A DNA stretch of 64,000 bases from Selaginella moellendorffii (Eukaryota > Plantae > Lycopodiophyta): contig NW_003314401.1 in NCBI RefSeq assembly GCF_000143415.4, positions 1-64,000 on the forward strand. The letters are read 5' to 3'. A program made the translations under genes and the position numbers. Below the pieces are notes generated by a model. That model made no database searches, was not told the origin of the DNA, and saw only the letters and a list, made by a program, of their open reading frames with translations. Of this stretch, positions 23,485 through 57,637 are shown piece after piece; the first letter of the stretch is position 1, and each line of letters opens with the position of its first letter.

Positions 23485-23743
23485 GTATGATCAGATGACT
23501 TCTTCAACATTGTCACCTTTGCAGCTTTAGCTGATTCATGGATGCACGCCATTTGGTCATGCCATCCGCGAGCTCAACTTGACTGACAGTGTTCCATTTG
23601 TTGAAGTGTTCCTGCTCATTTCAATCGTTTACTTCCAGAGCTTCACTGCAACCATGAGAATTTTCATGAGGTTTGAAGGTGATGCTTGAGTGTGAGTGTC
23701 ACAAAATGGCCAGTTGCCAAGGACTTTTTAATTTACAAGTCTG

Positions 23744-25227: not shown

Positions 25228-25285
25228 CGTTGGGAAAGATCCCCATGAGCCTGCCTTTGGAATGGATGTAAGCCACCATGTATCC
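25227..25285 (-). pseudogene. 59-bp fragment of the complex I 21-kDa subunit gene exon 2
   Basis: 58/59 identity to 47324-47382 (GYMVAYI.SKGRLMGIFPN). Confidence 0.9.
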
Positions 25286-26100
25286 TGCTTAGAAGGCTAA
25301 ACACCCCTAAGATCTATGGCTAGTGAGTAGGAGAATGTTGGTACAGATGATAGCATAGCAGCCATGTTTGTCACTCACTTCGTCGACCGGCCACCAATAA
25401 ACCCTAAACCCTAACAAAACTGCACTCTTCCATGCCGTCTTTTTTATAGAGGTTTGAAATGCCCTCTTGAGACCAAACCTTGTTGATTCTATCCTTATCT
25501 TCCAAGAGCTTATATTTGATATGATCCATCGCTATACTCCTCAGGTGCATGGAACTCCAATTTGAGCGCAACATGTCTTGGGACAGCTAGGAGGACACCT
25601 CATGATCCTCATGGACGAGTATTTCTTATTCCTCTTTGAGCTTCTCTTAGCTCGAAAGGACGTGAATTTCCCTTGAGAGTGCTGTTGCATCTAAATTATT
25701 TATGTTCTCTATAAGATTTAGTGAAAAACTTACTTCTTATCAATAAAGAATGAACATTATTTTTACTTATGATTTTGTGTATAATATTTAACCATGTTTT
25801 CAATTTGACTCTTCCTAATATATATCTATAATTATTATTTTTATTATGTTTTGCTACTAGTTTAACAAAATTTAAATATTTATATTGCTTTTTCTTTAGT
25901 ACTTCTTCATTTAAAAGTGCTATTGGCAGTATCATATATTTCCATTTTCAGAATATTATTTTTAAATATGCTTATAATCAGACCATAAAGACTTCTAAAC
26001 ACCAACCCACATGTCAAACTAATTTTAGATATTGAAACTTCAATTTGATTTTAAAGCACTTAAGAGGATTGTGCATATACAAAAGATCATGATTGCCATC

Positions 26101-26118
26101 TGTGTGTGTGTGTGTGTG
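26101..26118. repeat. (TG)9 microsatellite
   Basis: Read directly. Confidence 0.95.
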
Positions 26119-27139
26119 CATGCGCACACATGTGCATTTAATCCTTCTTTTCTTTCTTATTCAATGTCTTAATTTTTTCTTTGTTTCACACATTTCTAGG
26201 GCTATAGGGAGCCTTTATTCAAGAATAGCAGAGGGTTGCATACCTGCTGAAATAAAAATCCTGATATGAAGCAAGTTTGCAGAAGAACAATATACTAAAG
26301 TTTCCATTTCTCTTCATTTTATTGTTTTCTCACTCCAAATGGATGCACTCATTGCTGGTTCTACCATTCTTTGGGTACATTTTAGGGATTTCATCCACAA
26401 TTACAATGGATGGAACACTCTAGTATTTCATACTACTTTTTACCAAGACTAGCTCAAAAGGCTAGCTACTATTAGGAATGAGTAAACTCTATGGGACAAA
26501 TGAAATTTCTGTCTATTGTTAATCTTCAAGTTGTTTCTTCTCTTAAGCATTATAACTAGGGTTAGGCTGGATAGAAGAATCTAATGTCCATTCTCTGCTG
26601 CAAGGCAAAGTCTATAAGCCTCAGATAAAGAAGTTTACCTAAATTTCTCCCATTGGGATATGAGCATGAGTGCTTGAATTTCAAATCCAAGCTCCTTAGT
26701 AAGAAGGATTTAAAATAAGTTTTCCAGAAATATGATGATAATAATTCAACTTAGTTTTATTCTAGTGTTACTCTTGCAAAAGAATTTATATTTAGCTTTT
26801 TGGATAGATAGTTGAGATGGCAGAAGTGTTTTCTCGAGCTCATTTTATCCTAATTGAAAACTACATACCAGAGTCATAAACAGGCTTCAGAGGCAAGAAG
26901 TAGATATGTTTAAAGTTCTTTTATTTCCTGATTAATAATTGATTTTGCAGTATAGATCAAAATTATTTCAATGTTATTGTTCCCCAAGACAATAAAAGCA
27001 AAGGAAAAAGTGGCTTTGCCTTTGAACTTTTCATCAACTCTCTTCCAACATAAATCAGCCAATATTGCCATAGATATTGAATGCAAAGTTTAGTAAGTCA
27101 TTTTTTTTAAGAAGAAAATACTTTTAATATTCTTTATAG

Positions 27140-27312
27140 GCAACCTCTTTCACAAAAGTCAAAAACTTTAGCAAACATGGTTATGCAACACTTTTGCCAT
27201 GAAGGTGGTTATATCCTTGATTTCTTTAGTGGCATAGAGGCTTTTTTATTTGTTGCTTGACACAATAGTCATAATGCTTTTGGATTAGATTGTGATCTTG
27301 GCATTATGCAAT
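27140..27312 (+). pseudogene. Decayed amino-methyltransferase-like exon, copy B
   Basis: QPLSQKSKTLANMVMQHFCHEGGYILDFFSGIEAFLFVA*HNSHNAFGLDCD. Confidence 0.55.
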
Positions 27313-30081
27313 AATTTAGTGTATTATTATGAAGAATATGCCACCCCACATGAAGGTTGTAACTAAGTTCATGGAGAGGCATCCAAAACATTATAACATG
27401 CACATTAAGTAAAAGTTAGCTTTCATATCAAAACTCATTGATAATCATGCATGAGAGAAGAAGAGAGAAAAACAAAAAAGGTGAGAGAGAAGAAGAAAGC
27501 AAATTAGTTCTTCTATATGTATGGATTGTATATAGATTTGAGATATAAATTATTGTAGTTATAATAATATATCTGATATTAAATAATATACAATATAAAG
27601 TATAGTTGTAGTATAATTATAATGAGGAAATATTTTATAATATTTTATGTCATTATATTATTATTATAATGACAGCCTGATATCTGGTTCGCTACGTTTT
27701 GCCTTTTGAAGGTTGATTGCATTGGGAGTTTCATTACCGGCTGGGGTCCTGGAGACATTACAAGGATTAGAGAACGAGTCAGACTTTGTAAAGTATATAA
27801 AACGTACTTGTAAGCTTTATGACCTATGATTTTTGACACTCATAAACTTCCATATGAATTCTTCCAGTTGTATCGGGAGTCCAATCTTGGGGAGTTTACA
27901 GCTAGAGGCTCACTTTTCTCAGTTTTTTTTCCCTTGCCGGTGACTGTTGGCAACTCAAGACACTGCCAAGCAATTGGCACTAAGAATTCTCGGTTGGTTT
28001 TGGAGCTCCAGTAGCTCATCTGGAATAGTCGAGTACCACAAAAGCGAGAAGAAACTGGCAAGTACCTTCTTTGGGGTCGTGAAGCTGATACTCCGCCGCT
28101 AGACTTCATGCAAGCTTCAATCCTTGCACAGTTTGCTCACTATCAATGTCCGAGTTGCGTACGTACTCTAATGCTTAGTTAGGCACTTTACCGGTACCAC
28201 ACCCTCCTTTGGGACTGGAGCCGGAGCTGGAGCTGGAACCTCGATTGAGAAAGGGATCATGAACTCCAAGCCAGTGTATGGCTGCAAGGCCCTGGGAGGT
28301 AGTTCTCCAAAATGCAGCACAATGTTCACGGTCAGTTCAGCAGGTGGCTTTGGTTCGTTGGCCTGGAAAGAAACAAAGGGCTATGCAACAGAGGAGCTCC
28401 ATATCTTCCCAAAACCATTTTTTATAAGTTTCTATTTCCATCAAAACTTGAAGTCCACTTTCTTTGTGCGAGAATCTTTCTCGGCCTTGCGCTTTCGTTT
28501 CTTCGGAAACGTATGTAAAAGCTTAGGCAATTCGCAAAAAAAACATGTAAGTTTCTTTCATTTACCGCAGCAACCATGTTGCTTTTCTGCTGCTACTCTT
28601 CAAACCTGTGAAGTACTCAAAAGGAAAGCGAATGAAGCAGGAAAACGTCCACAAACCTTGCATGTTTCAGGCAGTAGAGTATTTGGAATTCCCGTCGAAG
28701 CAAATGAAATGGCAACTTTTCCGCTTTCCCTGCAGCGACATGCATAATTTCAGAGCCGAGAAAAAACTACCTATGAGTTCCGAGAAATGCAGATCATCTC
28801 ATCCAATGCAACACAAAAATTGTAGCTTCTAAAAATGGAAGTCCCTGCCTCTTCCTCTAGACGATTGAATTTGTCAAAAATCCGCTGGAACTCCACAAAT
28901 CCATGGCCCGAAGGGAGATATGTCTAGAACATATTCAATCTCCACGCTTTTGACATTCTGCTGGAGCAAAGCAAGCAATTCATAACGCAAAACCGAGACT
29001 ACCTTGCTCTAGCCGCCCAGCAGGGGTCTTCCTTCTTCTGCATCGTTCTGCCACTTCTCAGCCAACTCCCGATCAAACAAACCATAATATTAATAATAGT
29101 AATTTCTGTTAAAGAAATAGAAAATTAATTTAAGCTACAGTATTGTTTATATACATTCTAATATGGGTTATTGAGGAGCTCAAAAACCTCTCAGCAACCT
29201 GGTCTTCGTACTCTGCTGGGATTGGATAACCAGCTGCCTGCAACGCCTCTCAAGGATTTTCTCTTAATTTTGGGAATGGTGGGAGATTAGCAGGTTAATC
29301 CACTTCAATGGCTGAACTAAGACAACACTCAATCGGTGTTTGATGTTTGATATCATTTGTGGCGTCACTCTTTGCTGTTGGTTTTAGATCTACAATGAGG
29401 AAAGAAGGTTTGCACGTCATGAATACCTGCCAGAAGACGAAGGTTATCCTCACTGTGTCCTTGCCCGCCATTCACCAGAAGATGCATATGGTAGTATTCA
29501 CCACTTAAACGTTTTTTTAGAGACTCAGAAAACTTGCAGGATCTTGTGCAATTCATGGACAGAGAGAGGACCCATAGAGGACACACGCAAAAAGCTACCA
29601 CCAGATGTGGTGCAACAGCAGCAGGATCAAGGTGTTAAGTTGCCAACAATTTCTCGGCAGGCACAAGACCAGGAGCTCTTGGGAGGAGCCTTCTTAGCTT
29701 GTCAAGGTTCACGGCAGCAAGTATCCAGGACTGCCAGACGAAGAGCCAGAGACTTGCCAGATGTCCTTTCGTTCTTGTCATGTTGGTCGTGTTGTTTGAG
29801 CGGGTCAAGCTCACCATTCCCGGACGATCCGAGCGTCACTGCCCACATAGCATGGGATTGATCGCTAGGTTTTTTCCTTCGCTTGGTAATCATCTCCGAA
29901 TCGAAGCATGGTTTTTCTCAATTGCAAACCTGGTGAGGACGACAATCCTTTTTTCCCCGCTGGCGTGTTTGCGTCCGGGAGTTTGTAAACCGCCACTGCT
30001 TCTCCGCCAGCTCCTCGCCAAGTACATAAAAATTAATTCTTTATTGTAAAAACCAGGAATGCACATACCCCCTAGTGTGAT

Positions 30082-30936
30082 TTAGTCACTATCAAAACCA
30101 AATACTTCTGGCTCTCGCCATGTGGTCCCTTCGTACTCTGCTGGGATCGGATAACCAGATGCCTTCAACGCCTCCCTAGTCTCAGGCACCTGGAGTATCT
30201 GAAGCCTGTCATGGATGGCCCCGAACCAGGGGAAAGTGGTATACGTGCCTTGCGACCCAATTGCAAGGCTGGTGCCACTCAGCCCAAACTCGTTGCAGGA
30301 GAACACGATAACAGCATCTCCATGCGAGGCAGGCCACGCCTTCACACGATCATTGTCCGGGTAGCCGAGCCTCGCCACAACCTCATCCCTCATATTGCAG
30401 TGGAGTAGAACCTGGAGGGTGTTGACCTCCAGCCGCGTGGACCGATACAACTTGGGCTCCCAATCTCCAAACCCCACGCAGTAAGATGGGAAAGCCTTGA
30501 CCGCCATGTCTGCCACCATCGTCCCTGGGCTCTCGGTGCACGCGGGTGAAAGGATGATCCCCTCCACCTCCTTCCTTCCTTCCTTGAGGAAAGGAAACAC
30601 AAGCCTGATCTTGTCTCCAGCCTTGTAAATCTTGGTGGAGGGAACTTCTTCTTCTTCTGCGACTGTGAGGCAACACAAGCCCTCCCCAATAAGGACGGCC
30701 TTGTTGCCCTGGTCATCCCTTCCCAGAATCTCTGCAGCTTCCTCAACAGCAAAATCCCAATCGGACAAACCCAACCAAGCTTTTGCTATTCTCGCAAAAG
30801 GCTTCTTCACCCACGAAGAAGAATGCTTCAAACCAAGGTGTGACCTCACCTTGTCGACGTTCACAATCCATTCCCCAAAACGCGGCGGGAAGGGCTTCCA
30901 TCCGGTGCCAGGCTCCGCCAAATCCTTGCGCCCCAT
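30082..30936 (-). CDS. Intronless 284-aa orphan protein, copy B
   Basis: Paralog of 13962-14834 with an in-frame 18-bp deletion (VDVNAP) and a few substitutions. Confidence 0.6.
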   Translation of the reverse strand: MGRKDLAEPGTGWKPFPPRFGEWIVNVDKVRSHLGLKHSSSWVKKPFARIAKAWLGLSDWDFAVEEAAEILGRDDQGNKAVLIGEGLCCLTVAEEEEVPSTKIYKAGDKIRLVFPFLKEGRKEVEGIILSPACTESPGTMVADMAVKAFPSYCVGFGDWEPKLYRSTRLEVNTLQVLLHCNMRDEVVARLGYPDNDRVKAWPASHGDAVIVFSCNEFGLSGTSLAIGSQGTYTTFPWFGAIHDRLQILQVPETREALKASGYPIPAEYEGTTWREPEVFGFDSD

Positions 30937-31517
30937 TCTAAAATGACAACCCTAAACTTGCAAATTTATAGAGATTTGAGGTTGCTACTGGGTCATGCAT
31001 ACTATTCTCCCCATGACAGGCTTCAGATACTCCAGGTGCCCAGCAGAGTACGAATGATCCTTTATGCTTTATGTCTTAAGAGACTTACTGGAGCGGTATG
31101 TCTCGAATTGTACTTGTTTCATTCTTTTTTCTGTTTTTTATTCTTTTGGAATAGGTGATCAAGTGATTGTACACTTGATTCTTAGACAAATTTTGTGCAC
31201 CTCATCTGAGTGGCTTTGCTCAGTGAATGCTGAAGATGCTGTGGAAACTGAATGTGTCTGTGCATTTTCCTGAGGACAACCAGTGGATGGAAGAGCCCCA
31301 TTTGAAATTTTTGAGACTAGACAATTTGACAAAGTTACTTTTGATTTCACTATATATATGTATGCATAAAGAGGTGGGCTTTCTATCTATCCTCCCATTA
31401 TCTTTTAGTCTTCTTACTCCCTGCCCCACTCTGACTGCTCGCTTGAGGTAAGTATGCTATGATCTTGTCCTAAAGCAAAATTAAGCATTTGGGCATCTAA
31501 GGGCCTTTGTGGTTCTC

Positions 31518-33200
31518 TAGTATCTTAATAACTATTGACTAACAACCTTTACTGAGCTAAAGGGAATTAACACCTCCATTTCCACACTAAATCTACAAAT
31601 CTAGTATCTTGGTAATTATTGATTAACAACCTCTACTGAGCCAAGGAGAACCAGCACCTTTAATTCAATCCAATCTACTAATCCTTCCATTGTGTAGACA
31701 AATTATTCCATATGAGGCAACACCCGTGTGTGGTAGTCATATGTACCGTAGTCGCACAATGAATACCTTTGTCCATGGATAATTCACATAAGAGGGTAAT
31801 TATTGACTAACAACCTCTACTAAGCCAACACCTCCATTTCTGCACTAAATCTACCAATCCGGTATCTTGGTAACTTTTGATTAACAACCCCTATTGAGCC
31901 AAGGGGAACCAGCACCTTTAATTCAATCCAATCTACCAATCCTTCCATTATGTAGACAAGCTATTCCATGTGGGTAACTATTAGCTAACAACCTCTACTG
32001 AGCCAGCACCTCCATTTCTACATTAAATCTACCAATCCGGTATCTTGGTAACTTTTGACTAACAACCCCTATTGAGCCAAGGGGAACCAGCACCTCCAAT
32101 CCAATCCAATAGGCAACACCCATGTGTGGTAGTCACATGTACCGTAGTCCCACGGTAGATACCTTCGTCCGTGGATACTTTACACAAGAGAGTAACTATT
32201 GACTCTATTTCTGCACTAAATCTACCAATTCGGTATCTTGGTAACTTTTGACTAACAACCCCTATTGAGCCAAGGGGAACCAACACCTCCAATTCAATCC
32301 AATCTACCAATTTTTCTATTGTGTAGACAAGCTATTGCATGTGAGGTAACACCCGTGTGTGGTAGTCACACAGTGGATACCTTCGTCCGTGGATACTTCA
32401 CAACCCCTATTGAGCCAAGGGGAACCAGCACCTCTAATCCAATCCAATCTACCAATCTTTCCACCAATCCGGTATCTTGGTAACTTTTGACTAACAACTC
32501 CTATTGAGCCAAGGGGAATCAACACCTCCAATTCAATCCAATCTACCAATCTTTCCAATCTACCAATCTTTCCATTGTGTAGACAAGCTATTCCATGTGA
32601 GGTAACACCCGTGTGTGGTAGTCACACAGTGGATACTTTCGTCCATAGATACTTCACAACCTCTATTGAGCCAAGGGGAACCAGCACCTTCAATCCAATC
32701 CAATCTACCAATCTTTCCATTGTGTAGACAAACTATTCCATGTGAGGAAACACCCGTGTGTGGTAGTCACAGAGTGGATACTTTCGTCCTCTATTGAGCC
32801 AAGGGGAACCAGCACCTTCAATCCAATCCAATCTACCAATCTTTCCATTGTGTAGACAAACTATTCCATGTGAGGAAACACCCGTGTGTGGTAGTCACAG
32901 AGTGGATACTTTCGTCCATGGATACTTCACAACCCCTATTGAGCCAAGGGGAACCACACCTCCAATCCAATCCAATCTACCAATCTTTCGATTGTGTAGA
33001 CAAACTATTCCATGTGAGGAAACATCCGTATGTGGTAGTCACACGGTGGATACCTTCGTCTGTAGATACTTCAGAGAAGAGGAAAGATGTACGCATGGAT
33101 GCTCAATACATATGATTTCGGCAATGATGAATACCTTTGTCCGTGGATACTTCACACAAGAAGAAAGACATACGCATGGATGCTCAATACATATGATTTC
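31518..33200. repeat. Modular complex tandem repeat island, copy B (expanded)
   Basis: About ten tattgagccaaggggaacc cores at ~95-260 bp spacing, versus about four in copy A. Confidence 0.9.
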
Positions 33201-33298
33201 AGGTAGGAATACCTTGCTCAAGGGTATATTATACTTTTAAATAGCCACTAATCAATATAAATAGCCACTAATAAATGGGAATTGAACCTATGCCATTT

Positions 33299-33310
33299 GC
33301 TTTGATACCA
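33299..33310 (-). promoter_or_regulatory. tRNA-iMet-type PBS of a probable non-autonomous LTR element
   Basis: Minus strand TGGTATCAAAGC, 2 nt after ...GCATTACA (LTR-like end at 33313). A degenerate copy is at ~16325-16336. Confidence 0.5.
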
Positions 33311-35563
33311 CATGTAATGCACCTTATCTCTCTCCCCTTAAGCCAACTGAAAAAGGGATGATTGCTTGATGAGAGAGCCCTTAGTGGCTATTTTATCCCT
33401 ATTTATCCCTCAAGGTTCCAAGGATCCACGGTGACAGTATATCCAAATTTCATCCCATAATTACATGCACTACAAATACCCTTCTTGATACTGCTGGGAA
33501 AGAAAAAGGCTAAAAGAGATAATTCACCAGTTAGATTAACCAATAATATAGTATGTCGCTATTTGCTGTAGCAATTTCCCATTGCCTATGTTTTTGGAAA
33601 CCACTCGAATTTGTAATCCCCACTCAACCTTAGTAGAATAAAGTCTAAGCTAAAAAAGAAAGATATGTTTGTCTAAGAAGACTCAGAAAAACTTTTACTT
33701 GCATCAGATATATATAGGCAACCACTACCTGGAAGTTTTCGGCTGGGATAAGCCTACCATCTCATGACTCGAAATCCAAACCTTCTCTGCTGATTTATAC
33801 TTTCTCATGTTTCGAAAACATAAATACAATAAAAGAATAATGTTTGGAAGGCTAAAAACCTGGCCAACATCCCAAGATTTATGGCTCATGTGCTTGTAAG
33901 TGAGTAGGAGAATGTTGGTACAAACAACAGCACAGCGGCCACGCTTGTCACTCACTTCATCGACCATGAATTCTAGTGATTGCCAATAAACCTTAAACCG
34001 TAACAAAATCGAGTGCGAGGTAATGAGGTCTTTCTCTAGGATGCATCCTTGATGACTCTGTTCTTCCATGCTGTTTTTTTTAGAGGTTTAAGGATTTTTT
34101 TAGAGGTTTTCTCTTATTTTCACTTGTTTTTTCTCCATTTTATCTCTTTTTGTTTTAGTATCTAGTTCTTTTGTCAACTTCTCCCATATGGTTTCCTTTT
34201 AACTCTAGAACTCAACACTTTCTTTTTTCTTCATCTTCTCTTTTCTTCGTTTTTCTTTAGTCTTTTTTCCTCACAACAGTTGTCAACACAGGGCATCATA
34301 TTGGAGTCTACACCAATACTTAGGCCTTGTGTTCTCTACAACAGAGTTAACACATTCTTTAGATGGTTAGAGTTGAGCAAGATTCTCTAAAATATAAAAA
34401 TATCTCTTTATGAACTCTCTGCCCTAAAAAATGGGGAATATACCCCTGTGCCCATACCCTTAGAATATTCAAACAATAGAGAGTTGGATTTTAGAGTATG
34501 ATAGAGTGTTTTTCCCGCTGTTGAGAGGCTTCCTTCTCAACATTAACATAACAAACTAGTATGTCATGGATACCCTTGGCTATCTGTAATGGGATTAAAC
34601 ATGTGTTACACTCGCTAAATTCAAAGTCTATATAGAATTATAAATTTGTATAGTCTAGTAAGCTTATTGGTTATATGGCCATTCCTCCAAAGACTAATGA
34701 TGCTTGAATATGTCTAGGATGACTTGGCAATTTAGCCTACTTAAACCATGATCTATTTCATTTAGCCTTGATGGTGGCTGCTCCTTTCAAGTGAGTAACC
34801 CAAGAACCTTCTTCTTTTTCAGCTTCCTCTCAACAATTAGACAAAAATCCCTCAAATCCACTATACTTTCCCATCACTTACAAATTGCCCTTAATCCTCT
34901 AAGACCATATTGGGACAGAATATACAGTAGACACACACATGTATAGGGATACAATACTTATATACTCCTTGCTTTCACAAGTCACGGTAGTGACTATGCT
35001 TCAACAGGGATTAACAATTTCTCATAAGGACAAATAGATTTTGGAGGGAGGAACTTATACAAGAATTCCATGATCAAGAAATAAAGCATCACAGCAAGGA
35101 TATCCCCAAGGCTAGTACATGCCCTACATATGGTCAGCTTTGGCTGGAAGTTGAGGGCAGTGGTGTTTGCACTCTTGATGTTTTTGTTGTGGTTGGCTGC
35201 AATAGGTATGCATCATTAGATTAGTTTCCCGATGACAACACTAACAATCCCTATGGGACATTGGGGAATGTTCATATATATTTAACCATTACAATCACTT
35301 CATCTCCCTTCCTGGGAATGTAGGTCAAATGGCTTTTGGCCTGCCATGGTTGTGGTCACCAAGATTGTCCTGACATCCATTCAAACAGGAAAAATCGTCG
35401 CAAACTGTGTCATCTCATCTACGAGCTGATGCTTTCTGTGTACCTGAACAAAGACAACATGCCGACCTATAAAAGTCTATGTGCTAGAATTCATCCAACG
35501 GTTCATGATATGTCAGAACTACTTAAACAGCAGCCACGCCATATTCTCGTTTAAACCCGGGGC

Positions 35564-36394
35564 ATGAAGCGCCCGCGACGGCCACTGGAGCTGGAGGATG
35601 GAATCTCAGATGCCGACGACGACGACGATGTTGGGCGCAAGGCAAGCACGAGGTAGCTGCATTTCCAGTGATTCTATTCTTCATTTCTAGCGATCATTCT
35701 CTTCCAGGGTGGATTCTAGCCTTGATCCGATCGATAGTGATACCACGTCCGAGGTAACGAGACATAGCCTGGCCCTTCTCTTTCTTCTCCTCTCATTGAT
35801 TGTTTTTCTAGGATGCATCCTTGACCAATCTTTCTGTGCAAGAGCTTCAAGAGTTTAGCAGCGACGGCGGTGATCTTCCGGCAGAAACCTCGTCAAAGTT
35901 TAAGTCAGTGGCTCTTCCATGCCGTCCTTGACGTTTCTTTGATTCGTAAAGGTTTGAAGCACTCTTGGCACAACTGGGAGGGCGCCACAATCACTTGAGC
36001 TCAGACATGAAACCAGCTGGTATGTCTTTCCCTGTTTTGTTCTCTTCGACATGATCATGGTTCCTTGCTTTAGATGGTTCTCTCACTTTACGAGTGCTCG
36101 AGAAATCGTCGCCTGAGGCACATCTCACATCCACAAAGTGCGAGGTTTTGGAGACCTTCGAAGCTGTCACCGCTATTTTCGACAGCCTTTCTCCCGATGT
36201 ACAGGTCGGATGTGTTGTATCCATCCATCCTCCATGGGAAGGAAAGATCTTCGCTGAGGACAGTCTCTCTAATTTTGTGCCGTTTTTATTTTCAACCCAG
36301 GCACGAAGTAGCGAGTGTTAAAGGACATGGAAGAGTACTTCTCGTTCCTCGTTTTGAGCTTCTCTTGGCCCAAAAGGACGTGGATTTCCCTTGA
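35564..36394 (+). pseudogene. Copy B of the 19026-19863 gene, splice donor mutated
   Basis: ccatg|gtaag in copy A is ccatgggaag here. Confidence 0.35.
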
Positions 36395-36768
36395 AAGTAC
36401 AGTCGAAACTTCTCCTGCTGATTTTTTATTTTTATTTTTATTTTATGTTTTGTTTCAGGCTAACGTGAACGCACGTCCTTTGACACAGTAACAAAAAAAG
36501 TCTTGGTAAAGACGACTTGACGAAAAAAGCAAGTTCGACGATCCTGCCACGCCAGTCAATGATACACACTGACCTTGAAACTCTCTACGAGCCCCGCGTG
36601 GATTGCGAGATCATTGGCCGTCGCCGTCAACTAGCCTGAACATCCAAAAGCTCTAAGACACATCGAATTTCCGAACTCTCTACGCATCCTTCGAAGAGTC
36701 AAAGCAGGCAGCTTCTTCCCGCTTATTTAAGCAGACCAAGCAATGTGCTCGACTCACAGACTACAACA

Positions 36769-39615
36769 ATGGCTTCGCTTTCCGTGAATCAAGTGAATGA
36801 TTGGCTCAAGGCTCAAGAAATTACGCTCTCTCTGGATGTGGTAGCAGCTGCAAAATCACAGTTGGAGTTCCTTTCGCTGGTACATGCCAATTTCAAGCTG
36901 TTTGAGAGGCCTGTTCTGGAAAGGGCAATTGAGAGGTGAGATATTTACTTGTTTGATCTAGTTTGCTGATTTCTTCTTGGATTCTAGGTACCAGTACTGC
37001 TGCCTTCCGCTGCTAGCAAATTCTTCTGGGACTTTTGTCCCGCCACTCGACTGCGGCTGGATATGGCATTGCCATCGCTTGAATCCTGTGAGTGTGGCTA
37101 TTCATTATCTGTCCACTTCAATCTACTAAAGTTACGTGTCTGACTAGGTTCAATATGCTGACGACTGTAAGAGATTGTTCGGTAAAATTGTGGAGGGACC
37201 TTCTTTGGCGAGGCACAGAAATGATCTCCAACAAAGCGCCAGTACATGGGCTTCGAATTTTCCAGACGAACCATACACTCTTGACATTTACGCGATATAC
37301 CGAAAGACCAACCAATATCTTTTATGACTTGGCAGAAGCAGCTCTCAGGCAGAAAAGTTTCTACTATCAGGCAAGTGATGATCTTTCCTTGGAAGCAAAT
37401 TAACTTTGAGTACGCAGGTTTCTGAGCCGCATTACCTGGACGAGAGCTTCTTGGTAGCTGCTGTTGCACGTTACAAGGCGTTTCTCCATCTCGTACGCAC
37501 GTCTGGCACATCAACATTTTTCGTTCCCACTTACGACATCGATTTAATATGGCATACACATCAGCTTCACCCTGTGAGCTACCACAACGATCTCACACAG
37601 GTACTGGGAAGGATCTTCGAGCATGACGACACAGATAGCAACCGAGATTCCGGAGGAAAACTGGACAATGGATTCACAAAGACTCGATCTATGTGGGAAG
37701 ACACGTATGGCCTTCCATACGAGAAAGCAGGGTGCATGTATAGAGGGGAGCCACCAGCATCCATTCCCGGAACACGTGCTTATGATCCAGCCAAGCTCGC
37801 CAGGCTCGCTAGTAAAAACGATTATGACTTGGCTGAGCGAAAGACCATTCAGGTATTGGAGTTCGCAGTCTTATTGTCAATCTCGTCTGATCCGATTCTA
37901 TTCGATTTATGCAGGTTCATCTCTCCGTAAGAGGTACCAGAGGTTTGCCAGACGATAGGACCATCTACTACGTGATAAGCTCGTTAAACCATCAAAAGTA
38001 TCTGAATCTCGAGAGCCAACGAGGGAAGGCTTCCTCTCATCTGAGCGTAGTCTCAACCATAACAGCTGAACTCTCCACCGAAGGGCTGGTGCTCGCAGTT
38101 CGACAGAAGCGCTTTTTGATATCCAAAACCGTGGGCCTGCTCCTGATTCCATGGAAAACTGTCATCCGCTCGGAAACGCAATCACTCAGCGGCTGGTTTC
38201 CATTGCTGGAGACAAAGAAGGACCGAGAAGTGTCGGTGCTGGTTTACATCTCCGTTACTCCTCCAGTCACTGCGCCTTATCTCTTCAGAAGCGTGAGAGT
38301 GAGAGACACGGGAGACGACTGTGCCACTCACAGCCTCCACAGTCACAGAGAAGGCATGTGGATAACAAGGAATGTTTTCGACCACACCGTTGCAGGTTTG
38401 CAAATTGAGCCACTTTTTCTAGAACTAATGTGGCAACTTTTGCTTTAGATACAAGGGTGGGGGGCTTTTGCTAAGGAGCATTCTCGACACCGATAAAGTT
38501 ATCCATGTTCACAAAGGAGGGTGGACATACGACGGTTCTTACAACACTGGCTCCGTAAATGGTATGAGCATCTTCTGGACATGTTTTGCAAAAGATTTAT
38601 GGTGTTGCTTTGTTTTCTCAGGTGAAATTCTAGGATCTGCATGGCAACTAGACAAACCATCTTCAGTGTCTAGGAGATGGTCTCTAATGAACGGGAAGGC
38701 TATTTTAACTGTTAACAGAGATGTCAAGGATAAGCACTGGAACATGAAACCACAGCTCCGCGTTGAAATGAAATCCCACGACTGTCCGGTGAGTTCGTCT
38801 GCATATATAGTGGTACAGATTCTCTGATATAGTGGCTGATTCTCTGGAAAACTTGATTGTAGATCATGCTCTTCTCGGGGCGTCACCTGGAATTTGCTGT
38901 TCCTGGTGCATCCGAGCGACAGGAAGCGTGGTTTGTGACAATGGTAAGATTCACAAGAGACGCTCCTCAAGGCAAGGCGACAGCTCTTTTCAACTGGCGG
39001 TCTGGTGGCATGCAGGTAGACTTTAATCGAAGTTTAGCTCCAATTTTGTGATTTGATTTGTCTCAGGTTGATCGCAATGAGGATGTGCTGCTTGTGCTTC
39101 TTTTATCGGCAACCATAAGCATGTCCGTGTCGGATATGCTCGGCAAAGCCATTCCTTCGTGGACGAGGACGAGTAAACGAGTGATCGTCTCAGAAGAAGA
39201 ACAAGATCATTGGGGTGAGAAACAAGTTTCTTTGCACGCAAATTCTAAGAACATTGCTGCTTGACCAGGTGCTGTGACAGTTGATCGCCGTCGCCGCGAC
39301 GGTGGTGACGGTGGTGACGGTGGCGGTGATGTTGGTTGTGGTGATGGTTGTGATGGTGATGGCCAGTGCTGGTATGACGAAGGTGGTTCGTATTGTGGCG
39401 GAGGTGGTGGTGGCGGAGGCGGGTGTGGCATCAGCGGAGGTGGGGGATGTGGTGGAGCAGGAGGTGGCGGAGGGGGAGGAGGAGGTTGTGGAGGAGGTGG
39501 CGGAGGCGGTGGTGGTGGGTGTGGCGGAGGAGGAGGTGGTGGAGGCGGTGGAGGCGGTGGTTGTGGTGGCGGTGGCGGGGGGGCCGGCGGCGGCGGCGGC
39601 GGCGGGGGTATTTAG
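36769..39615 (+). pseudogene. GRDP1-like gene (DUF1399), copy B
   Basis: Same exon-3 frameshift and same TGA (39262-39264) as copy A, plus an extra 22-bp frameshifting deletion near 38388. Confidence 0.85.
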
Positions 39616-39708
39616 ATGTTTATAAATCGTGTTTTTTCTGCCTGATTACAAACAGCTTTATTTATTTAAAGAAATTCATTTTATGCTTTTGTTTCTTGCC
39701 GCTTTTGC

Positions 39709-39972
39709 CTATATAGCAACACACCCAACAAAGATCCCGGCTTTCTGCTCCTCGCAACAGACTACAGTGTTGGAGCACTGATTCACAGCGACAACATTAA
39801 AGCACTTGAGAATGTCTGCGTCAATCTCTACAGGAATTCCTTCAGAAGCGTCAATGTCGTTGCAACAGAGTGTGGTACCCTTGTTACATACTTCTGTTTC
39901 TGCGGATGCAGTGTGCGTAAGGCATGCTGCCAGGACAAAGAACGCAAGAACAAGCTGAGTAGAGGAAGCCAT
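39709..39972 (-). CDS. Class I hydrophobin-like small secreted protein (87 aa)
   Basis: Signal peptide MASSTQLVLAFFVLAACLTHTASA. Mature Cys spacing C-X6-CC-X19-C-X8-C-X5-CC-X10-C-X3. TATTTAAA ~30 nt upstream of the ATG (40004-40011). Confidence 0.75.
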   Translation of the reverse strand: MASSTQLVLAFFVLAACLTHTASAETEVCNKGTTLCCNDIDASEGIPVEIDADILKCFNVVAVNQCSNTVVCCEEQKAGIFVGCVAI

Positions 39973-40281
39973 TTCACTGTTCCTTTCCTGGAGTTAGAGG
40001 GTCTTTAAATAAGGGCTGGCTTGTATGATCAGATGACTTCTTCAACATTGTCACCTTTGCAGCTTTAGCTGATTCATGGATGCACGCCATTTGGTCATGC
40101 CATCCGCGAGCTCAACTTGACTGACAGTGTTCCATTTGTTGAAGTGTTCCTGCTCATTTCAATCGTTTACTTCCAAAGCTTCACTGCAACCATGAGAATT
40201 TTCATGAGGTTTGAAGGTGATGCTTGAGTGTGAGTGTCACAAAATGGCCAGTTGCCAGGGACTTTTTAATTTACAAGTCTG

Positions 40282-42684
40282 TCAGTCATAAGTTTTTTCC
40301 TGGGAATCTTCCTTTTGAGGATGATCACCACAATTGACAAACGAATCGAGACTGATTTGACCACTGGATAGCTTTGATCCGGGCTTCTTCCACGCGCCAA
40401 TCTTCCTGCTCATCGCATGAACTCTAGCTTTCTCCTCAACCATGCCCAAGCTTCCATAGATGTTGGCCATGAGAACGTAAGTAGCAGCCTGCTTCTCATC
40501 CAGCTTCACCAGTGCCTCAAACGCCAGCCTTCCAAATTCCAAGCTCTTCCACTTGTGACACGAGCTCAGCACGATGGTCCATGTCACCACATTCGCTGCG
40601 AAAGGCATCGAGTCCGCCATCTCCACCGCCTCCTGGAGTTTGTTTGCCCGGCCTAGCATGTCCACCATGACGTGGTAGTGCTCCATAGTCACGCTTGCAG
40701 CCTTCCGGGAGCACAGCTCCTGGAAGAGCTTCCTCCCTCTTTCAACCAGCCCGGCATGGCAGCACGCGTTCAAGACCGCCAGTGTGGTGATGCCATCCGG
40801 TTGGAAGCCTTCTTCCACCATCCTTGCAAAGAGCTCGAGGACGGCGTCGGTTTCACCGTGGCGGCTGTAGCCTGTGATGAGCGAGTTCCACGAGATTATA
40901 TCCCGGGCTCTTGTTCTAGCGGAATCGAAAACCTGGTGAGCCACGACCATGCTCCCGCACTTGCCGTAGAAATCCACCACCGAGTTCGTGACAAGCCTGC
41001 CAGCCTCGAGTCCACACCGGCATATATCTGCATGGATCTTCTTTCCAAACTCGAGCGATGCAACTGTGGAGCAGGCCTTCAGCACGGCAACGAACGTCTG
41101 ATCGTCGGGCTGGCAACGTTTCTCTTCAAGCCTCATCTTTGTGAAGAGCTCCAGTGCCATATCTCCCTCGTCGTTTTGAGCACAGCCGAGTATGAGCGCT
41201 GTCCATGACACCACATCGTGGCGCTTCATCCTGTCAAACACCCGGCGAGCCTGGAGGACGCTGCCGCACTTGGAGTACATATCCACCAGCGTGCTGCTCA
41301 CACAGATGTCCGGCTCAAACCCGGCTTTGAAAGCTTCCCGATGAACAGCCATGCCTTTCTCCAGAGCTTTCACCTTGAGAACTTTGCCGTCCTCTTCAAT
41401 GCTGTCCTCTCGCAGNNNNNNNNNNNNNNNNNNNNNNNNNNNNNNNNNNNNNNNNNNNNNNNNNNNNNNNNNNNNNNNNNNNNNNNNNNNNNNNNNNNNN
41501 NNNNNNNNNNNNNNNATTCTCTCAAACATCCGAAGGGTCAGCTCGCTCTCGCCATTCTGTGCGTAGCCAAACAGGAGAGCGGTCCACGAGACCACGTCCT
41601 GAGCCACCATCTTCTCAAACACGATGCGGGAGTCCTCCATGCTTCCGCACTTCGCGTATGTATCCACCAGGACACTTCCCACGAACATCTCCGTTGCAAC
41701 TCCACTCTTGGCAGCTTCACGATGCACAGCCATGACTTTCTCCAAGCACTGGATCTTTACACCTGAGTCGTTTGCCACCTCTCTGTCCGTCAGCCCCGTG
41801 CAAGCTTTGAGCGCAGCAACAAAAGCATGCGAATCTGTCCTGCGTCCTTCTTCTTCGCCAAGCATCCGAGCGAAGAGCCTGAGGCCAACCTCATTCTCCC
41901 CGTTCGTAGCATAGCCCAGGATCAATGCCGTCCAGACCACCAAGTTGTGGCTCGGCATTCGATCGAAAACTCTGCGAGCATCCCTCATGCTCCCACACCT
42001 GGCATAAATGTCCACCAGCGAGCTCGCCACAAAGTTATCCAGCTCGCATCCAAATCCCTCGGCTTGCAAGTGGACAGCCATGACTCTTTCCAGAGTCCTT
42101 GTCTTCACCACCTTTCCACCGAATCTCCTGCCTTCCTCCCTTGCAGCCAAGCTCGAAAGGCCCTTGAGCACAGCCAGAAACGTTAGAGAATTCGGCCTTG
42201 CGACGAGCAGCATCCGCGAGAAGAGCTCCAAAGTCGCTTCTCCCTGGCCGTTCTTGGAGTAGCCGAGCATGAGCGCTGTCCAGAGAACCACATCGTGGTG
42301 CTCCATGGCATCAAACACCGAGCGAGCCTCGCCCATGCAGCCACATCTCGCGTACATGCTCACGAGAGAGCTCGCAACGTAGAAGTTGGAACCGTTGCCA
42401 CTCTCAATCGCTGCGGCATGGAGCTGCCTTCCCCTCTCGATCGCTCTTGAGCCGCTCGCCGCCTTCAATGCAGCAATGAGCTCCAGCACCATCTCCTTTT
42501 TCCTCTTGTCCTCCTCTTGTTTGATCTTGTTCCAGCTGAGAATTTTTTGATCCTCTGAGCCACTGCTGCTTGTTTTTGTGAAAGTCCTTCCGTGCATTCC
42601 TTCGTCGCTGGTGCTGGAAGCGCCATAGCCTCTCCTTTCTCTCGAGAAAAACGGCGAATTGCGAGCCGCCGGCACCACAGCCAT
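40282..42684 (-). CDS. PLS-class PPR protein with E/E+-like C-terminus
   Basis: Repeated LVDMYAKCG...DVVSWTALI motifs, HYHVMVDMLGRA, and WKKPG...GDHP. Intronless, spans a 100-N gap. First in-frame ATG after the upstream TAG is at 42684. Confidence 0.88.
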   Translation of the reverse strand: MAVVPAARNSPFFSRERRGYGASSTSDEGMHGRTFTKTSSSGSEDQKILSWNKIKQEEDKRKKEMVLELIAALKAASGSRAIERGRQLHAAAIESGNGSNFYVASSLVSMYARCGCMGEARSVFDAMEHHDVVLWTALMLGYSKNGQGEATLELFSRMLLVARPNSLTFLAVLKGLSSLAAREEGRRFGGKVVKTRTLERVMAVHLQAEGFGCELDNFVASSLVDIYARCGSMRDARRVFDRMPSHNLVVWTALILGYATNGENEVGLRLFARMLGEEEGRRTDSHAFVAALKACTGLTDREVANDSGVKIQCLEKVMAVHREAAKSGVATEMFVGSVLVDTYAKCGSMEDSRIVFEKMVAQDVVSWTALLFGYAQNGESELTLRMFERXXXXXXXXXXXXXXXXXXXXXXXXXXXXXXXXXXLREDSIEEDGKVLKVKALEKGMAVHREAFKAGFEPDICVSSTLVDMYSKCGSVLQARRVFDRMKRHDVVSWTALILGCAQNDEGDMALELFTKMRLEEKRCQPDDQTFVAVLKACSTVASLEFGKKIHADICRCGLEAGRLVTNSVVDFYGKCGSMVVAHQVFDSARTRARDIISWNSLITGYSRHGETDAVLELFARMVEEGFQPDGITTLAVLNACCHAGLVERGRKLFQELCSRKAASVTMEHYHVMVDMLGRANKLQEAVEMADSMPFAANVVTWTIVLSSCHKWKSLEFGRLAFEALVKLDEKQAATYVLMANIYGSLGMVEEKARVHAMSRKIGAWKKPGSKLSSGQISLDSFVNCGDHPQKEDSQEKTYD
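41416..41515. other. Assembly gap (100 N; 70 nt in paralog A)
   Basis: N run. The copy A interval 24540-24609 is 70 nt. Confidence 0.95.
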
Positions 42685-43519
42685 GACATGGGAGGGAATG
42701 TGCAAGAGCTAGGCCAGGTAATCCCATACCTTTCTCCATCGCGGCATCGCCCAAGGCTCTGGAACCCTAGTCTTATAAACACGCATAATATAAAAACTTA
42801 TTAACGTTTTGAATGAAGTCATCAACATTTATACTTTGATCACATTTCTTTCTTTTCAAAAATCTGATGAAGTTGTATTGGTTTTGGAATACCATAGAGA
42901 GAAAACCTGTATGTTAATACAAGCATATTGCAAGATCTAGAGAATTTTACCAAAAGAAAAGTGATAAAAGTTTTAAAAAATATGACAAATTTAATTGGTG
43001 TTCAGAATTTTTATTATTATAAATATCTAAATGTTTATATAGAAGAATATACTATTATATTCAATCATGGAATTACAATCCTTTGCTTTTATGATTGGGC
43101 GGTGAGAGTTGTTTGGGTTGTTCTTTCTAGGTTCCCCTAGGAGCTGGGATTGTCTCGGAATCCAGAGCTGTAATTTAAAGACGTTGTCTTCTTAAGTTAA
43201 GTTCTCTGTAGTGTCCTGTTGACTTTTTTTGGTAGATGTGGCCTTCTTGACTATCAGTTGAGTCTTTTCTATAGCTTCAAAACTAGCTGTATTAGTACAA
43301 ATGTTCTTGGAAGATAATTAAGTTGGCAGTATAAAGTCCACTTTAGGAGCTCTCACATGAGCTTCGTGTGTATCGGGTTTAGGGAATCTCTAGTTAATTG
43401 CATGAATGAACAAAAGGACGATCATACAACTTACACCCTCGAAGAAGGACAATCTTAACTCAATAAATTCTAAGCGTCCAAAGAGACAAACCCATTCTCA
43501 TTCAGCTGCTCTTACAATC

Positions 43520-43795
43520 ATGGCTTTTTCTTCTTCTTCAATTAAGGTTATTGCCACATTCCTGGCCCTGAGTGCTGCTCTCTTTCTCAATCCTGCCTTG
43601 GGACAGGGCAACCAAACTTGTGGAAATGATTCCACTTCTTACTGCTGCTCGAATTTCCCTGCTGCACCTCCTGGTACACTTGTGACTGTCAATGCTGCAA
43701 ATTGTGCGGTAAATGTGGGTAGCGAGTGCGGAGGGACTCCTGTTTGCTGCCAGCAGACAGACTCCACCAACGTTCTGGCATGCACCACCATCTAA
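43520..43795 (+). CDS. Second hydrophobin-like small secreted protein (91 aa)
   Basis: Signal peptide MAFSSSSIKVIATFLALSAALFLNPALG. Cys spacing C-X7-CC-X18-C-X7-C-X5-CC-X10-C-X3. Intronless. Confidence 0.72.
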   Translation: MAFSSSSIKVIATFLALSAALFLNPALGQGNQTCGNDSTSYCCSNFPAAPPGTLVTVNAANCAVNVGSECGGTPVCCQQTDSTNVLACTTI

Positions 43796-45847
43796 TCTCC
43801 CAGAAACTTAAAAAAAAAATTAAATTATTATGTAACCACCACTTTATTTTCAATCAAGATTTATAGTTGACCACTCTTCTTTCTTCTTAAAATTCTTACA
43901 ATATGCTCCAAGTCCTGTTGTTGGTTTTGGGTCAGTAGTAATACTACTGTTGTTTACATTTTAGCCTGAAGAGTCTACATGTAGAAAAAATACCAGCCCC
44001 AGGTTTCAATTGTCCATTATCATTTGAGATATGATCATTTAATGGGTTTTTGTTAGGAGGAAAATGCCCATAATTCCGCTTTATACCACAGCCTTATATT
44101 TTTACATGACAACACAAATCATATCAAGAAGACCTCAACTAAAATAATATAAAGAAGAAGCAAAAAACACCATTCATTTCATAAACTAACTTTAAAAATA
44201 ATATATTATTTGCACGGCATCTGTCTTGTGGACAAACTACTAGAATTTAATATTATGATAGTTTGCTTGGGATATGCTTTTATAAAATTAATAATATACT
44301 TTTTTAAAATTGTGGTCTTAAAAGTATAATAGACCTTTCAAACTCTGAAGCATGCAGCAGCATGGCAATCAATTAGTGGCTTCTAGTTTGGGACTGGATC
44401 AAGTGCCACATATAATGGTCTCCCAAGTATAGATAGGCTAGGTAAGGATGTGTTCTTGGTGTCACAATTAACATAACTGACATAATTAATCAACTCATTT
44501 CTTTATCCAATGAATTAATCAATCAAGTACTAAAGTGACTTAAGCACATCCAATAGTGTTGTGCCACGTGGTCATAAACCCTAGTCACTTTTTCTTCTTG
44601 TGGTTATAATCATAGTCACTTTGTAAGCAATCGCAAGTGAATGGGTCTATATGTGAGCAAGTTTCAGCAACACATCTTTGTTCTTCTAGTCAGGCACCTG
44701 TATAGATGCTATCGACAAGGTCTTGCAGCTCTTGACACCCTCTCCTAGTGTTGCTCAGTGGCCTCTCGGAGAATCTATAGTGTGTTGGCACTAGAAGCAA
44801 ACTTGTGGTGAGTAGTCTTCTCATGACTAGGTACTGTCACCTATCTCTTAGTAATCTTGTAGGTGCCATCCACTAGTGTCTTGTGGAACCAATCAATTTG
44901 AGGCTTCTTTGCCTTTTTTATGCAATTGACTATGTAGTGTGTTAGCATTATTTATGCAGTTTGTAAGAGCTTATAGAGGCTATTCCTTTTGACATAAATT
45001 GTTGGGTAAGTACTTCTATAATTTTTATAGTAAAATAAGTGTAACTCTCTATGACAACAAATGTGTATACCTATTTTATAATAGTTGAAGGTCCTTTCGA
45101 CTATATTGTGATAAGTTTACAGCTTGATACCTAATTCAATAGTGGTTTAAATTGATCCTCATCTATTTATTCATTGTTATATTTCTTGAAGGTGATTGTA
45201 AACTAGTTAGATGTATCTTAAAACCCTATGAATATTATAAGTTACTTGTTGGCGAATTCTTTTAAATATTCTTCTCTTATTATTGTCACAACAATAGAAA
45301 ATTGATAATACTAAACCCTTTATTATTTCCTCTTCTGCTAGTGGAGTTAATTGGCATTTCATACTTAAATTGGATGAGCATAAATATGGAATTCCTATGT
45401 GTTATTAGCTAAGTGAACATAACTTAGTAAAAAGTACCCCATCTCATTATGTCTTTTATTGGTGAAATCTTGCATATTAAACTTTAATCCCTCAATACCA
45501 CTACATAATAATTTATTGTGTCCACCAAGACACTTTTGCTATGTGTTAGTTATATTTTAGTCTCATTGGCTATTTATGAAAAATGTCAATCTAATAGTAA
45601 AAATGTAGAGCTTGTTTTGAATACTAAAGCATCATTTTATATTTATTAAGTTTTTATAATTATTTTGGAGATTAACTCCTAGGTGAAAGCCTAAAACATA
45701 CTTTTATAGGGGTGTAAGTCAAGAATGGGTGACCAACTTAATATATTGTTTAGCTTCTTGCTAAACAACTGTGGACCAGGAGCTTGAGCAGGTTCCCCAG
45801 AAAGGGTGATCATTGGTACAATTTATCCTTGGGACAAAGACTTTGTT

Positions 45848-46200
45848 GAGGGGGAAGAATTGTTAGGTGTCAGCTTTAACTATGGTCAAAGGGAGGTTCA
45901 AGGGTATATTAAGGCATATTAGGGTAAGGGACTTAACCTACCCTAGGGCTCATAGTGGAGCAGCAGTGCAGTGGAGCTTTTGAGGTAGCTTGGGGGTGGT
46001 TGGGTGGTGAGGAACCTCAAGAGGTGGTATAGCGTAGTTTAGGGCAACTAGATCTTTGTATTTTTGCGCCGGCATTCAACTTAGTTATAAACTTACTATA
46101 TTAGATGGTGGAGTACCCATATTTTATATTAGGTATATTGAAATAAACTAACTTTGTTTTGTGTGTTGGTTTTAGCATTAAAATGTTAAATGCTCTAGGA
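45848..46200 (+). mobile_element. Possible PPT plus 3' LTR start of an old gypsy element
   Basis: GAGGGGGAAGAA followed by TGTTAG at 45861, preceded by a ...gggacaaagactttgtt gypsy-like end. Right boundary is a guess. Confidence 0.3.
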
Positions 46201-51342: not shown

Positions 51343-53103
51343 ATGCGATGGGTTCGAATTGCGCGCGCTGGCCGCCCCCGCCCGGCAAAGGGATCGATCA
51401 GGCGCATCTCACTCCTCGCGGAGCACAGGCCACCGATCGCGGCAGTCCGCGCGAAGCTAGCGGGCGTGATCGACTACCTCAGAGACGAGAGGAATTGCGT
51501 CGACTTCGACGCGATCAAGAGCGCGCTCGTCCTGTGCAGCGATTGCAAATCCCTGCCCGATGGCCGCTTCGTGCACTCCCGGATCGTGGCGCTCAAGCTC
51601 GAGGGCGAGCGCAGCCTCTCCTCCTTCCTCATCTTCATGTACGCCAAGTGTGGCGATCCCGACGCGGCGCTGGCCGTCTTCGCCAAGATCAAGGAGCTCA
51701 ACCAGGCCTGCTGGAATGGGCTTCTCACGGCTTTCATCCTCAATGGCCGATCCAAGCAGGCGATCCATCTCTTCCGCGTGATGCAGCTCGAGGGAACCGC
51801 GCCCAATCGATCCACCTTCGTCACGACCTTCAATGCGTGCACTCGAATCGGCTCCATCGCCACTGCCAAGGGCATCTACGCCACGATCGCCCACCTCGCA
51901 GCGGTGTGTAGCGCCGATCTCCACAACGCGCTGCTCAACACCTACTGCAAGCTTGGATCTCTCGCCGACGCCATCGCCCTTTTCGCCGAGATCGTGGAGA
52001 AGAACGTTGTGTCGTGGACACTGCTCGTCTCGGCATTTGCCCAGCACGGGCATTTGGATCTCGCGATCGTTTCGCTCCAGCGGATGCACCACGAAGGGAT
52101 CCAGCCCAACCGGATCACCTTCCTGGCTGTTCTTGACGCTTGCATCGGCGAGAGGGAGCTCGTTATCGGTAGAACGATCCACCGGAGCTTGATCGACGCT
52201 GCGATGGACAAGGAGGTCTCGGTGGCGACGTGCCTTGTGGACATGTACACGAAGTGTGGGAGCCTGGACGAAGCTAGAGCGGTGTTTGATGGCATGGGCG
52301 CCATCGCCGACGTGATCACTTGGACTGCGATGATCTCGGCCTACGTCAAGAGCGATCAAGCACGAGAAGCGCTGCGGCTCTTCCGGATGATGCAACTGGA
52401 TGGAGTGAAGCCCAACTGCGTCACCTGTTTGATCTGTCTCAACGCCTGCGCCAGCCTCACGGATCTCCGAGAGGGGCGATTCATCCACGAGAAGATCACG
52501 CAGAGTGGATTCCAGGAGATCAATCTCAACGTTGGAAACGCGCTCGTCGACATGTATGGCACCTGTGGGAACCTCGCGGTTGCCAAGTCGGTGTTTGATC
52601 AGATGCTCGAGAAGGACAAGGCGACTTGGAACTCGCTCATCGGATCTTTCTCGCAGTTTAGCGAGAGCTCGTCGACGCTGGAGCTCTTCTTCGCCATGCA
52701 GCTCGAGGGTGTCTACCCCGACGCGATAACTTTCGTGGGAGTTCTCTTCGCTTGCAACTCCGCCGGGATGCTGGCTGACGGACACCAGTTCTACGTCTCC
52801 ATGCTCCTCGACTTTGGCATCGAGTGTCGGTTCCAGCACTGTGGATGCATCCTCGATCTGCTGGCCAGAGTTGGATGGCTCGACTTCGCCGAGGAGTACG
52901 TGAGGACGATGCCGTTTTATCCCGATGACAAGAAGTGGATGACGCTGCTCGGCTCGTGTAAGATCCATGGCGACATCCACCGCGCCGAGAGAGCGGCACA
53001 AGGATCGATAGAGCTCACTCCGGGCGACTCGTCGCCATACGTTGTCCTGTGCAACGTTTACGTGAGCGAAGAACTTGACGAGATGGCTGCTGCTGCTGGC
53101 TGA
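51343..53103 (+). CDS. PLS-class PPR protein (E-type end, no DYW), 586 aa
   Basis: Intronless ORF with PLS triplets and C-terminal WMTLLGSCKIHGD...SSPYVVLCNVY. Confidence 0.93.
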   Translation: MRWVRIARAGRPRPAKGSIRRISLLAEHRPPIAAVRAKLAGVIDYLRDERNCVDFDAIKSALVLCSDCKSLPDGRFVHSRIVALKLEGERSLSSFLIFMYAKCGDPDAALAVFAKIKELNQACWNGLLTAFILNGRSKQAIHLFRVMQLEGTAPNRSTFVTTFNACTRIGSIATAKGIYATIAHLAAVCSADLHNALLNTYCKLGSLADAIALFAEIVEKNVVSWTLLVSAFAQHGHLDLAIVSLQRMHHEGIQPNRITFLAVLDACIGERELVIGRTIHRSLIDAAMDKEVSVATCLVDMYTKCGSLDEARAVFDGMGAIADVITWTAMISAYVKSDQAREALRLFRMMQLDGVKPNCVTCLICLNACASLTDLREGRFIHEKITQSGFQEINLNVGNALVDMYGTCGNLAVAKSVFDQMLEKDKATWNSLIGSFSQFSESSSTLELFFAMQLEGVYPDAITFVGVLFACNSAGMLADGHQFYVSMLLDFGIECRFQHCGCILDLLARVGWLDFAEEYVRTMPFYPDDKKWMTLLGSCKIHGDIHRAERAAQGSIELTPGDSSPYVVLCNVYVSEELDEMAAAAG

Positions 53104-57577: not shown

Positions 57578-57637
57578 GACAGCGTTTCCACCGTTGAATC
57601 AAATGCGCCTCCCAGCCGCACGAATGCTAATCGGGCT

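Follow-up and report, generated by a model that had tools for sequence, protein, structure and literature searches.

Small secreted eight-cysteine proteins resembling fungal class I hydrophobins encoded in the genome of the spikemoss Selaginella moellendorffii

Hydrophobins are described as unique to the fungal kingdom (PMC3364958; PMC12655489). Why, then, does a nuclear scaffold of a lycophyte carry a short open reading frame (ORF) with the cysteine framework of a class I hydrophobin? In this study, we examined a stretch of 64,000 nucleotides (hereafter the window), which corresponds to bases 1-64000 of scaffold GL377705.1 of the Selaginella moellendorffii assembly GCA_000143415.2 (PMC11276031), starting from an earlier note that had described an intronless 87-aa ORF with a signal peptide, a TATA-like box and eight mature Cys, lying next to a GRDP and a PPR gene and duplicated with them. 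Our findings show that this observation holds in full. The interpretation put forward there, a horizontally acquired (or convergent) surface-active, rodlet-forming protein, is only partly supported. At least three unannotated small genes of this kind are present, designated here hyd1 (the ORF first noticed), hyd1' (its near-identical tandem copy) and hyd2 (a divergent paralogue), and their resemblance to fungal class I hydrophobins extends beyond the cysteine pattern, pointing to an old fungus-to-plant gene transfer, although fold, expression and function are inferred by analogy only. The features of the locus are collected in table 1.

Table 1. Features of the hydrophobin-like locus in the 64,000-nucleotide window of S. 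moellendorffii.
Feature	Position	Strand	Description
hyd1	39709-39972	-	Complete intronless CDS, 87 aa, ATG start
hyd1 signal peptide	39901-39972	-	Residues 1-24
hyd1 mature domain	39712-39900	-	63 aa, eight Cys, C-X6-CC-X19-C-X8-C-X5-CC-X10-C-X3 (mature Cys at 5, 12, 13, 33, 42, 48, 49, 60)
hyd1 stop codon	39709-39711	-	
TATA-like TATTTAAA	40004-40011	-	32-39 nt upstream of the hyd1 ATG; candidate core promoter
Two overlapping AATAAA motifs	39657-39666	-	43-52 nt after the hyd1 stop; candidate polyadenylation signal; conserved in the duplicate copy
hyd1'	23174-23484	-	Tandem-duplicate copy, sequence visible at 23174-23310; last 45 codons (23174-23308) plus stop visible (23171-23310); 5' part hidden in the 174-N gap
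hyd2	43520-43795	+	Divergent paralogue, 91 aa; signal peptide about residues 1-29; mature 62 aa, C-X7-CC-X18-C-X7-C-X5-CC-X10-C-X3
GRDP-like gene, 3' part	37406-39615	+	Plant gene with Gly/Cys-rich tail, convergent with hyd1; its stop is 93 bp from the hyd1 stop
GRDP-like domain (PF07173)	37406-37930	+	E 1.8e-23
Gly-rich last ORF of the GRDP-like gene	39274-39615	+	
PPR gene with E motif	40282-42705	-	Between hyd1 and hyd2, ending 309 bp from hyd1; PPR E 1.8e-62, E_motif E 1.9e-10; annotated as a 762-aa PPR product
Tandem duplication	9534-42133		Units 9534-25227 and 25932-42133, about 16 kb, about 95% identical; each carries the GRDP-like gene, a hyd1 copy and PPR sequence; first PPR copy cut at the junction
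Assembly gaps	11352-11451, 23311-23484, 41416-41515		The second (174 N) lies in hyd1', the third (100 N) in the PPR gene

Is the gene anatomy real, and could it have arisen by chance? Every Cys interval of hyd1 lies inside the class I ranges given in the note (C-X5-7-CC-X19-39-C-X8-23-C-X5-CC-X6-18-C-X2-13), with X19 and X8 at their lower limits, whereas hyd2 falls one residue under the lower limit in two loops. To the original description we add a ninth Cys (residue 17), located within the hyd1 signal peptide. Judged by inspection and hydropathy profile, both proteins display a hydrophobic N-terminal core (residues 7-16 in hyd1) and small residues at -3 and -1 of the putative cleavage site, A-S-A before Glu25 in hyd1 and A-L-G in hyd2. 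Given the position of the TATA-like box, the 5' UTR of hyd1 would be very short. Both full ORFs start ATGGCT. A six-frame pattern scan of the window recovered one strict and two loosened matches to the class I framework, both behind signal peptides, while neither the strict nor the loosened pattern occurred in any of 300 block-shuffled windows. Although hyd1 and hyd2 are only 27% identical, both are still intact, with the signal peptide retained and all eight Cys in register.

The genomic context is that of a plant. The distances of about 95 and 310 bp to the GRDP and PPR genes given in the note are, more exactly, 93 and 309 bp, and no N separates hyd1 from either neighbour. The block is duplicated in the assembly, with a sequenced junction, as shown by a self-comparison of the window with blastn. 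In hyd1', the visible part is 97.8% identical to hyd1 over 45 aa (tblastn) and differs in one codon, GTT to TTC (Val85Phe), while the gap equals the missing 174 nt exactly and the upstream flank resumes in register after it. With one codon change in 135 nt and an equally conserved upstream flank, the recent duplicates give no signal of purifying selection and differ too little for a selection test, and hyd1 and hyd2 are too diverged for one. No transposon-like terminal repeats flank the genes, hence no sign of transposon capture, and no Rfam family was found in 36000-46000. The neighbouring genes map only to this scaffold. Neither hyd1 nor hyd2 is an annotated product of the assembly, exact-product look-ups for both returned nothing, and no annotated gene lies between record positions 42685 and 47277, where hyd2 is found. 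Codon GC3 is 45-47%, below the species mean of 60.7% but inside its range.

Are these proteins specifically hydrophobin-like? The profile search that the note had proposed as a check returned PF01185 as the only Pfam family matching hyd1 up to E 10, aligned end to end (profile 1-79 of 79) at a significant E of 3.6e-4; yet the score of 21.6 bits lies just below the gathering cutoff of 23, and most of such a score comes from the Cys columns. For hyd2 only Eas (PF22354, 11.7 bits) and Hydrophobin (11.1 bits) were matched, both weakly. A profile of the Selaginella sequences searched against 177,635 PDB sequences retrieved EAS first (E 7e-4), an immunoglobulin chain second (E 0.2) and MPG1 third. 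Protein language-model neighbours of hyd1, hyd2 and mature hyd1 are all hydrophobin clusters (0.85 with 178 shared features, and 0.82), the nearest being PF01185 families, whereas plant LTP/8CM clusters score only 0.53-0.60. Thus, apart from the one immunoglobulin chain, every independent approach places hydrophobins at the top.

Since hydrophobin scores are dominated by Cys, we asked whether the similarity goes beyond the framework. A homologue search seeded with the EAS (8-64) and MPG1 (10-92) rows of the PDB search returned only seven proteins, in effect EAS, MPG1 and their near copies, and the comparisons that follow rest on these two fungal families. Alignment of the Selaginella pair to EAS and MPG1 with hhalign gave a probability of 89.9% (E 1.7e-6, 52 columns). 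hyd2 is 40% identical to EAS over 57 aa (E 3e-6), with CC, C4, C5 and CC in register, while hyd1 matches EAS at E 5e-4 and is 32% identical to an MPG1 orthologue over 59 aa (E 3e-5), including the C5 to C6C7 block and the C-terminal G-hydrophobic-C stretch. With Cys positions fixed and the remaining residues shuffled, z reached 5.9 for hyd2 against EAS and 5.3 for hyd1 against the MPG1-like protein; shuffling only within each inter-Cys loop still gave z 4.0 (p 7e-4) and 3.4 (p 0.004), respectively. However, EAS and MPG1 were chosen because they were the best PDB hits, and these p-values therefore carry a selection factor of roughly ten; also, the hyd1 alignment to the MPG1-like protein does not place C4 on C4, so that part of this similarity is not topologically consistent. 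By comparison, the two bona fide fungal hydrophobins reach only z 1.2-1.3 against each other, and reversed targets score at background. The Selaginella proteins are therefore as close to fungal class I hydrophobins as they are to each other, and closer to them than two accepted family members are to one another.

Structure prediction and comparison with known hydrophobin folds, where a small beta-barrel core is held by disulfides C1-C6, C2-C5, C3-C4 and C7-C8 (PMC3364958), yielded low-confidence models only. AlphaFold2 gave pLDDT 45 for the single sequence, and pLDDT 57.5 with pTM 0.39 and all-beta secondary structure from a seven-row alignment that itself contained EAS and MPG1. On that model, Foldseek ranks EAS, SC16 and many Swiss-Prot class I hydrophobins first, but at E >= 1.3 and TM 0.3-0.47, that is, without significance, and VIA-align gives Z 2.0 to EAS.

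Where could such genes have come from? An exhaustive phmmer search found no protein at E <= 0.001 among 1.84 billion representatives of about 15 billion proteins, a result that rules out a recent contaminant from any sequenced fungus and any close annotated plant relative, but leaves no donor to be named. Word-indexed homologue searches with hyd1 alone and with a Selaginella alignment found nothing, and two metagenome scans, one with the Selaginella alignment and one with the EAS/MPG1 alignment, gave no confirmed loci. The identity of 27% between hyd1 and hyd2 implies a long residence in the lineage. Vertical inheritance from a common ancestor of plants and fungi would, we infer, require very many losses, leaving old horizontal transfer, which we favour, or convergence.

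Overall, we suggest, with moderate confidence, that hyd1, hyd1' and hyd2 are real nuclear genes of S. moellendorffii encoding small secreted proteins that are distant homologues of fungal class I hydrophobins. In this view, a single old transfer from a fungus into the Selaginella lineage would have been followed by an old duplication (hyd1 and hyd2) and by the recent 16-kb tandem duplication (hyd1 and hyd1'). By analogy with the fungal family (PMC3364958), the signal peptide would be removed, four disulfides would lock a small beta core, and the amphipathic monomer would be secreted to the wall or surface, assembling at air-water or hydrophobic-hydrophilic interfaces into a film that changes wettability or adhesion. 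What our analysis demonstrates is the gene anatomy, the plant context and a specific sequence similarity to hydrophobins; the fold, the disulfide pairing, expression, self-assembly, including rodlet formation, the biological role, and the transfer itself, with its direction and age, are inferred, the latter without the support of a tree. A bolder reading, at present rather unlikely though not excluded, is that the transfer gave Selaginella a working hydrophobin family, with rodlet- or film-forming proteins secreted to control the wettability or adhesion of its own surfaces (spores, cuticle, rhizophore or root), or to interfere with fungal hydrophobin layers; these would be the first hydrophobins outside the fungal kingdom.

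The main alternative, which we consider unlikely, is convergence: a lineage-specific plant family of secreted Cys-rich peptides, for example antimicrobial or signalling peptides, may have arrived independently at the C-CC-C-C-CC-C framework, whether or not its members are surface-active. Small disulfide-rich proteins evolve fast, with database scores dominated by Cys, and the subthreshold Pfam score, the low-confidence models, the lack of a detectable relative at E <= 0.001 among 1.84 billion representatives, the loops shorter than in typical class I proteins, the strong acidity of hyd1 (10 D+E against 3 K+R) and the C4 mismatch with MPG1 all speak for this view. Yet the similarity to EAS and MPG1-like exceeds both kinds of shuffles, as well as the similarity between the two fungal proteins themselves, the Cys of hyd2 align in register with those of EAS, hhalign agrees, and no other Cys-rich family appears in Pfam up to E 10. 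Less likely still, the ORFs could be relics that are not expressed or no longer make a working protein, given that they are unannotated, that no caller in a 15-billion-protein collection has called them or a near relative, that their GC3 is close to the genomic background rather than to typical S. moellendorffii genes, that the TATA-like box is unusually close to the ATG, and that no selection is visible between the recent duplicates. Nonetheless, two paralogues at 27% identity still keep an open frame, a start in good context, a signal peptide and all eight Cys, which neutral decay would have destroyed; an AATAAA motif is conserved after the stop, and short intronless genes are commonly missed by annotation pipelines. 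Finally, fungal contaminant DNA joined to plant sequence by the assembler is very unlikely. Although the reference is an older scaffold assembly with gaps, and hydrophobins are otherwise known only from fungi (PMC3364958), the ungapped junctions with both plant neighbours, the repetition of the same arrangement at about 95% identity, the divergent third member in the next intergenic region and the absence of a close match in any sequenced fungus all speak against it.

A 2026 review of hydrophobin taxonomic distribution (PMC13514795) contains none of the terms "non-fungal", "Viridiplantae" or "outside", with "horizontal" occurring only in a reference title, and no paper in the library searched links hydrophobins to Selaginella, to lycophytes or to fungus-to-plant gene transfer. 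If these genes are true homologues, the family is not kingdom-restricted; a structural, self-assembling surface protein, rather than an enzyme or transporter, was taken up by an early vascular-plant lineage and kept through duplications; and the reference annotation of a model lycophyte misses a whole small-protein family.

How, then, do the Selaginella proteins compare with known systems? EAS, the class I hydrophobin of Neurospora (PDB 2FMC), is likewise secreted with eight Cys in the same order, and is the best PDB sequence match and the top, though not significant, Foldseek PDB row; it differs in having longer C3-C4 (25 residues against 18-19) and C7-C8 (17 against 10) loops, the latter reportedly harbouring its amyloid-forming stretch, and in being a fungal protein for which rodlet formation is shown, a property only inferred for the Selaginella carriers of the framework. 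With MPG1 of Pyricularia and the PF01185 family (fungal class I hydrophobins such as SC3 and SC16), hyd1 shares a whole-profile match 1.4 bits under the cutoff, but the C4 of MPG1 is not aligned with that of hyd1 because the C4-C5 loop of MPG1 spans 19 residues against 8, and the mature Selaginella proteins (62-63 aa) are shorter than the 70-130 aa given as typical (PMC13514795), with the C3-C4 and C4-C5 loops at or just below the class I minima. Class II hydrophobins (PF06766; HFBI/HFBII, cerato-ulmin) display the same eight-Cys order and appear lower in the language-model and Foldseek lists; however, PF06766 is not matched up to E 10 for hyd1 or E 1 for hyd2, and the spacings found here (C3-C4 18-19, C4-C5 7-8, C5-C6 5) are class I-like and do not fit the class II values of 11, 16 and 8-9. 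Plant nsLTP, 8CM and hydrophobic seed proteins (PF00234, PF14368, PF14547) are also small, secreted and eight-Cys, but their C-C-CC-CXC-C-C motif, on a helical fold, is absent here, there being no CXC and two CC pairs, and no Pfam match to them was found for hyd1 up to E 10, in agreement with the note, which had held that they do not fit. Bacterial chaplins and rodlins, the Streptomyces surface amyloids, are functional analogues of hydrophobins (PMC3364958) and appear as remote language-model neighbours of mature hyd1 (0.45-0.50); yet they are unrelated sequences without the eight-Cys framework, and the parallel is one of analogy only.

The window carries the hydrophobin-like genes hyd1, its duplicate copy hyd1' and the divergent paralogue hyd2. 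A tandem duplication of about 16 kb, at about 95% identity, carries the GRDP-like gene, hyd1 and PPR sequence; in the first unit the PPR copy is cut at the junction, which is sequenced without N. The gap of 174 N in that unit equals the length of the sequence missing relative to the other duplicate (39849-40022); it is a sized gap, and hyd1' is probably complete in the real genome. The GRDP-like gene ends in a Gly-rich tail with regularly spaced Cys (G-runs broken by C), built of 9-15-nt repeats, and the length of this tail differs between the two duplicate units (113 against 124 codons in the ORF). We also found a Ty3/gypsy-type LTR retrotransposon, whose direct repeats of 390 bp are 99% identical and flank ORFs with gag, aspartyl protease, RT, RNase H and integrase domains; it looks like a young insertion. 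In addition, four PPR genes occur within 20 kb, all much more GC3-rich (67-78% for the three measured) than the hydrophobin-like genes (45-47%).

Coordinates of the features in the window
Feature	Position	Strand
Tandem duplication, first unit	9534-25227	
Tandem duplication, second unit	25932-42133	
PPR copy of the first unit (ORFs)	23744-25304	
Gap of 174 N (hyd1')	23311-23484	
Gly-rich tails of the GRDP-like gene	39274-39615 and 22725-23099	
Ty3/gypsy-type LTR retrotransposon	1336-6938	minus
Direct repeats of the retrotransposon	1336-1725 and 6549-6938	
PPR genes	40282-42705, 51343-53103, 53168-55618, 57575-60235	
hyd2 stretch from C2C3 to C4	43658-43714	
Mature hyd1	39712-39900	minus

The hyd2 stretch from C2C3 to C4, ending VNAANC, also aligns with the stretch of the fungal hydrophobin EAS from C6C7 to C8 (residues 86-107 of the sequence P0004), ending INAANC, in a second HSP with an E-value of 0.031; this echoes the two-fold internal symmetry of the C-CC-C / C-CC-C framework. 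Among the remote language-model neighbors of mature hyd1 are bacterial rodlins and a chaplin-domain cluster, at scores of 0.45-0.50; these are functional analogues of hydrophobins, and this is a lead only.
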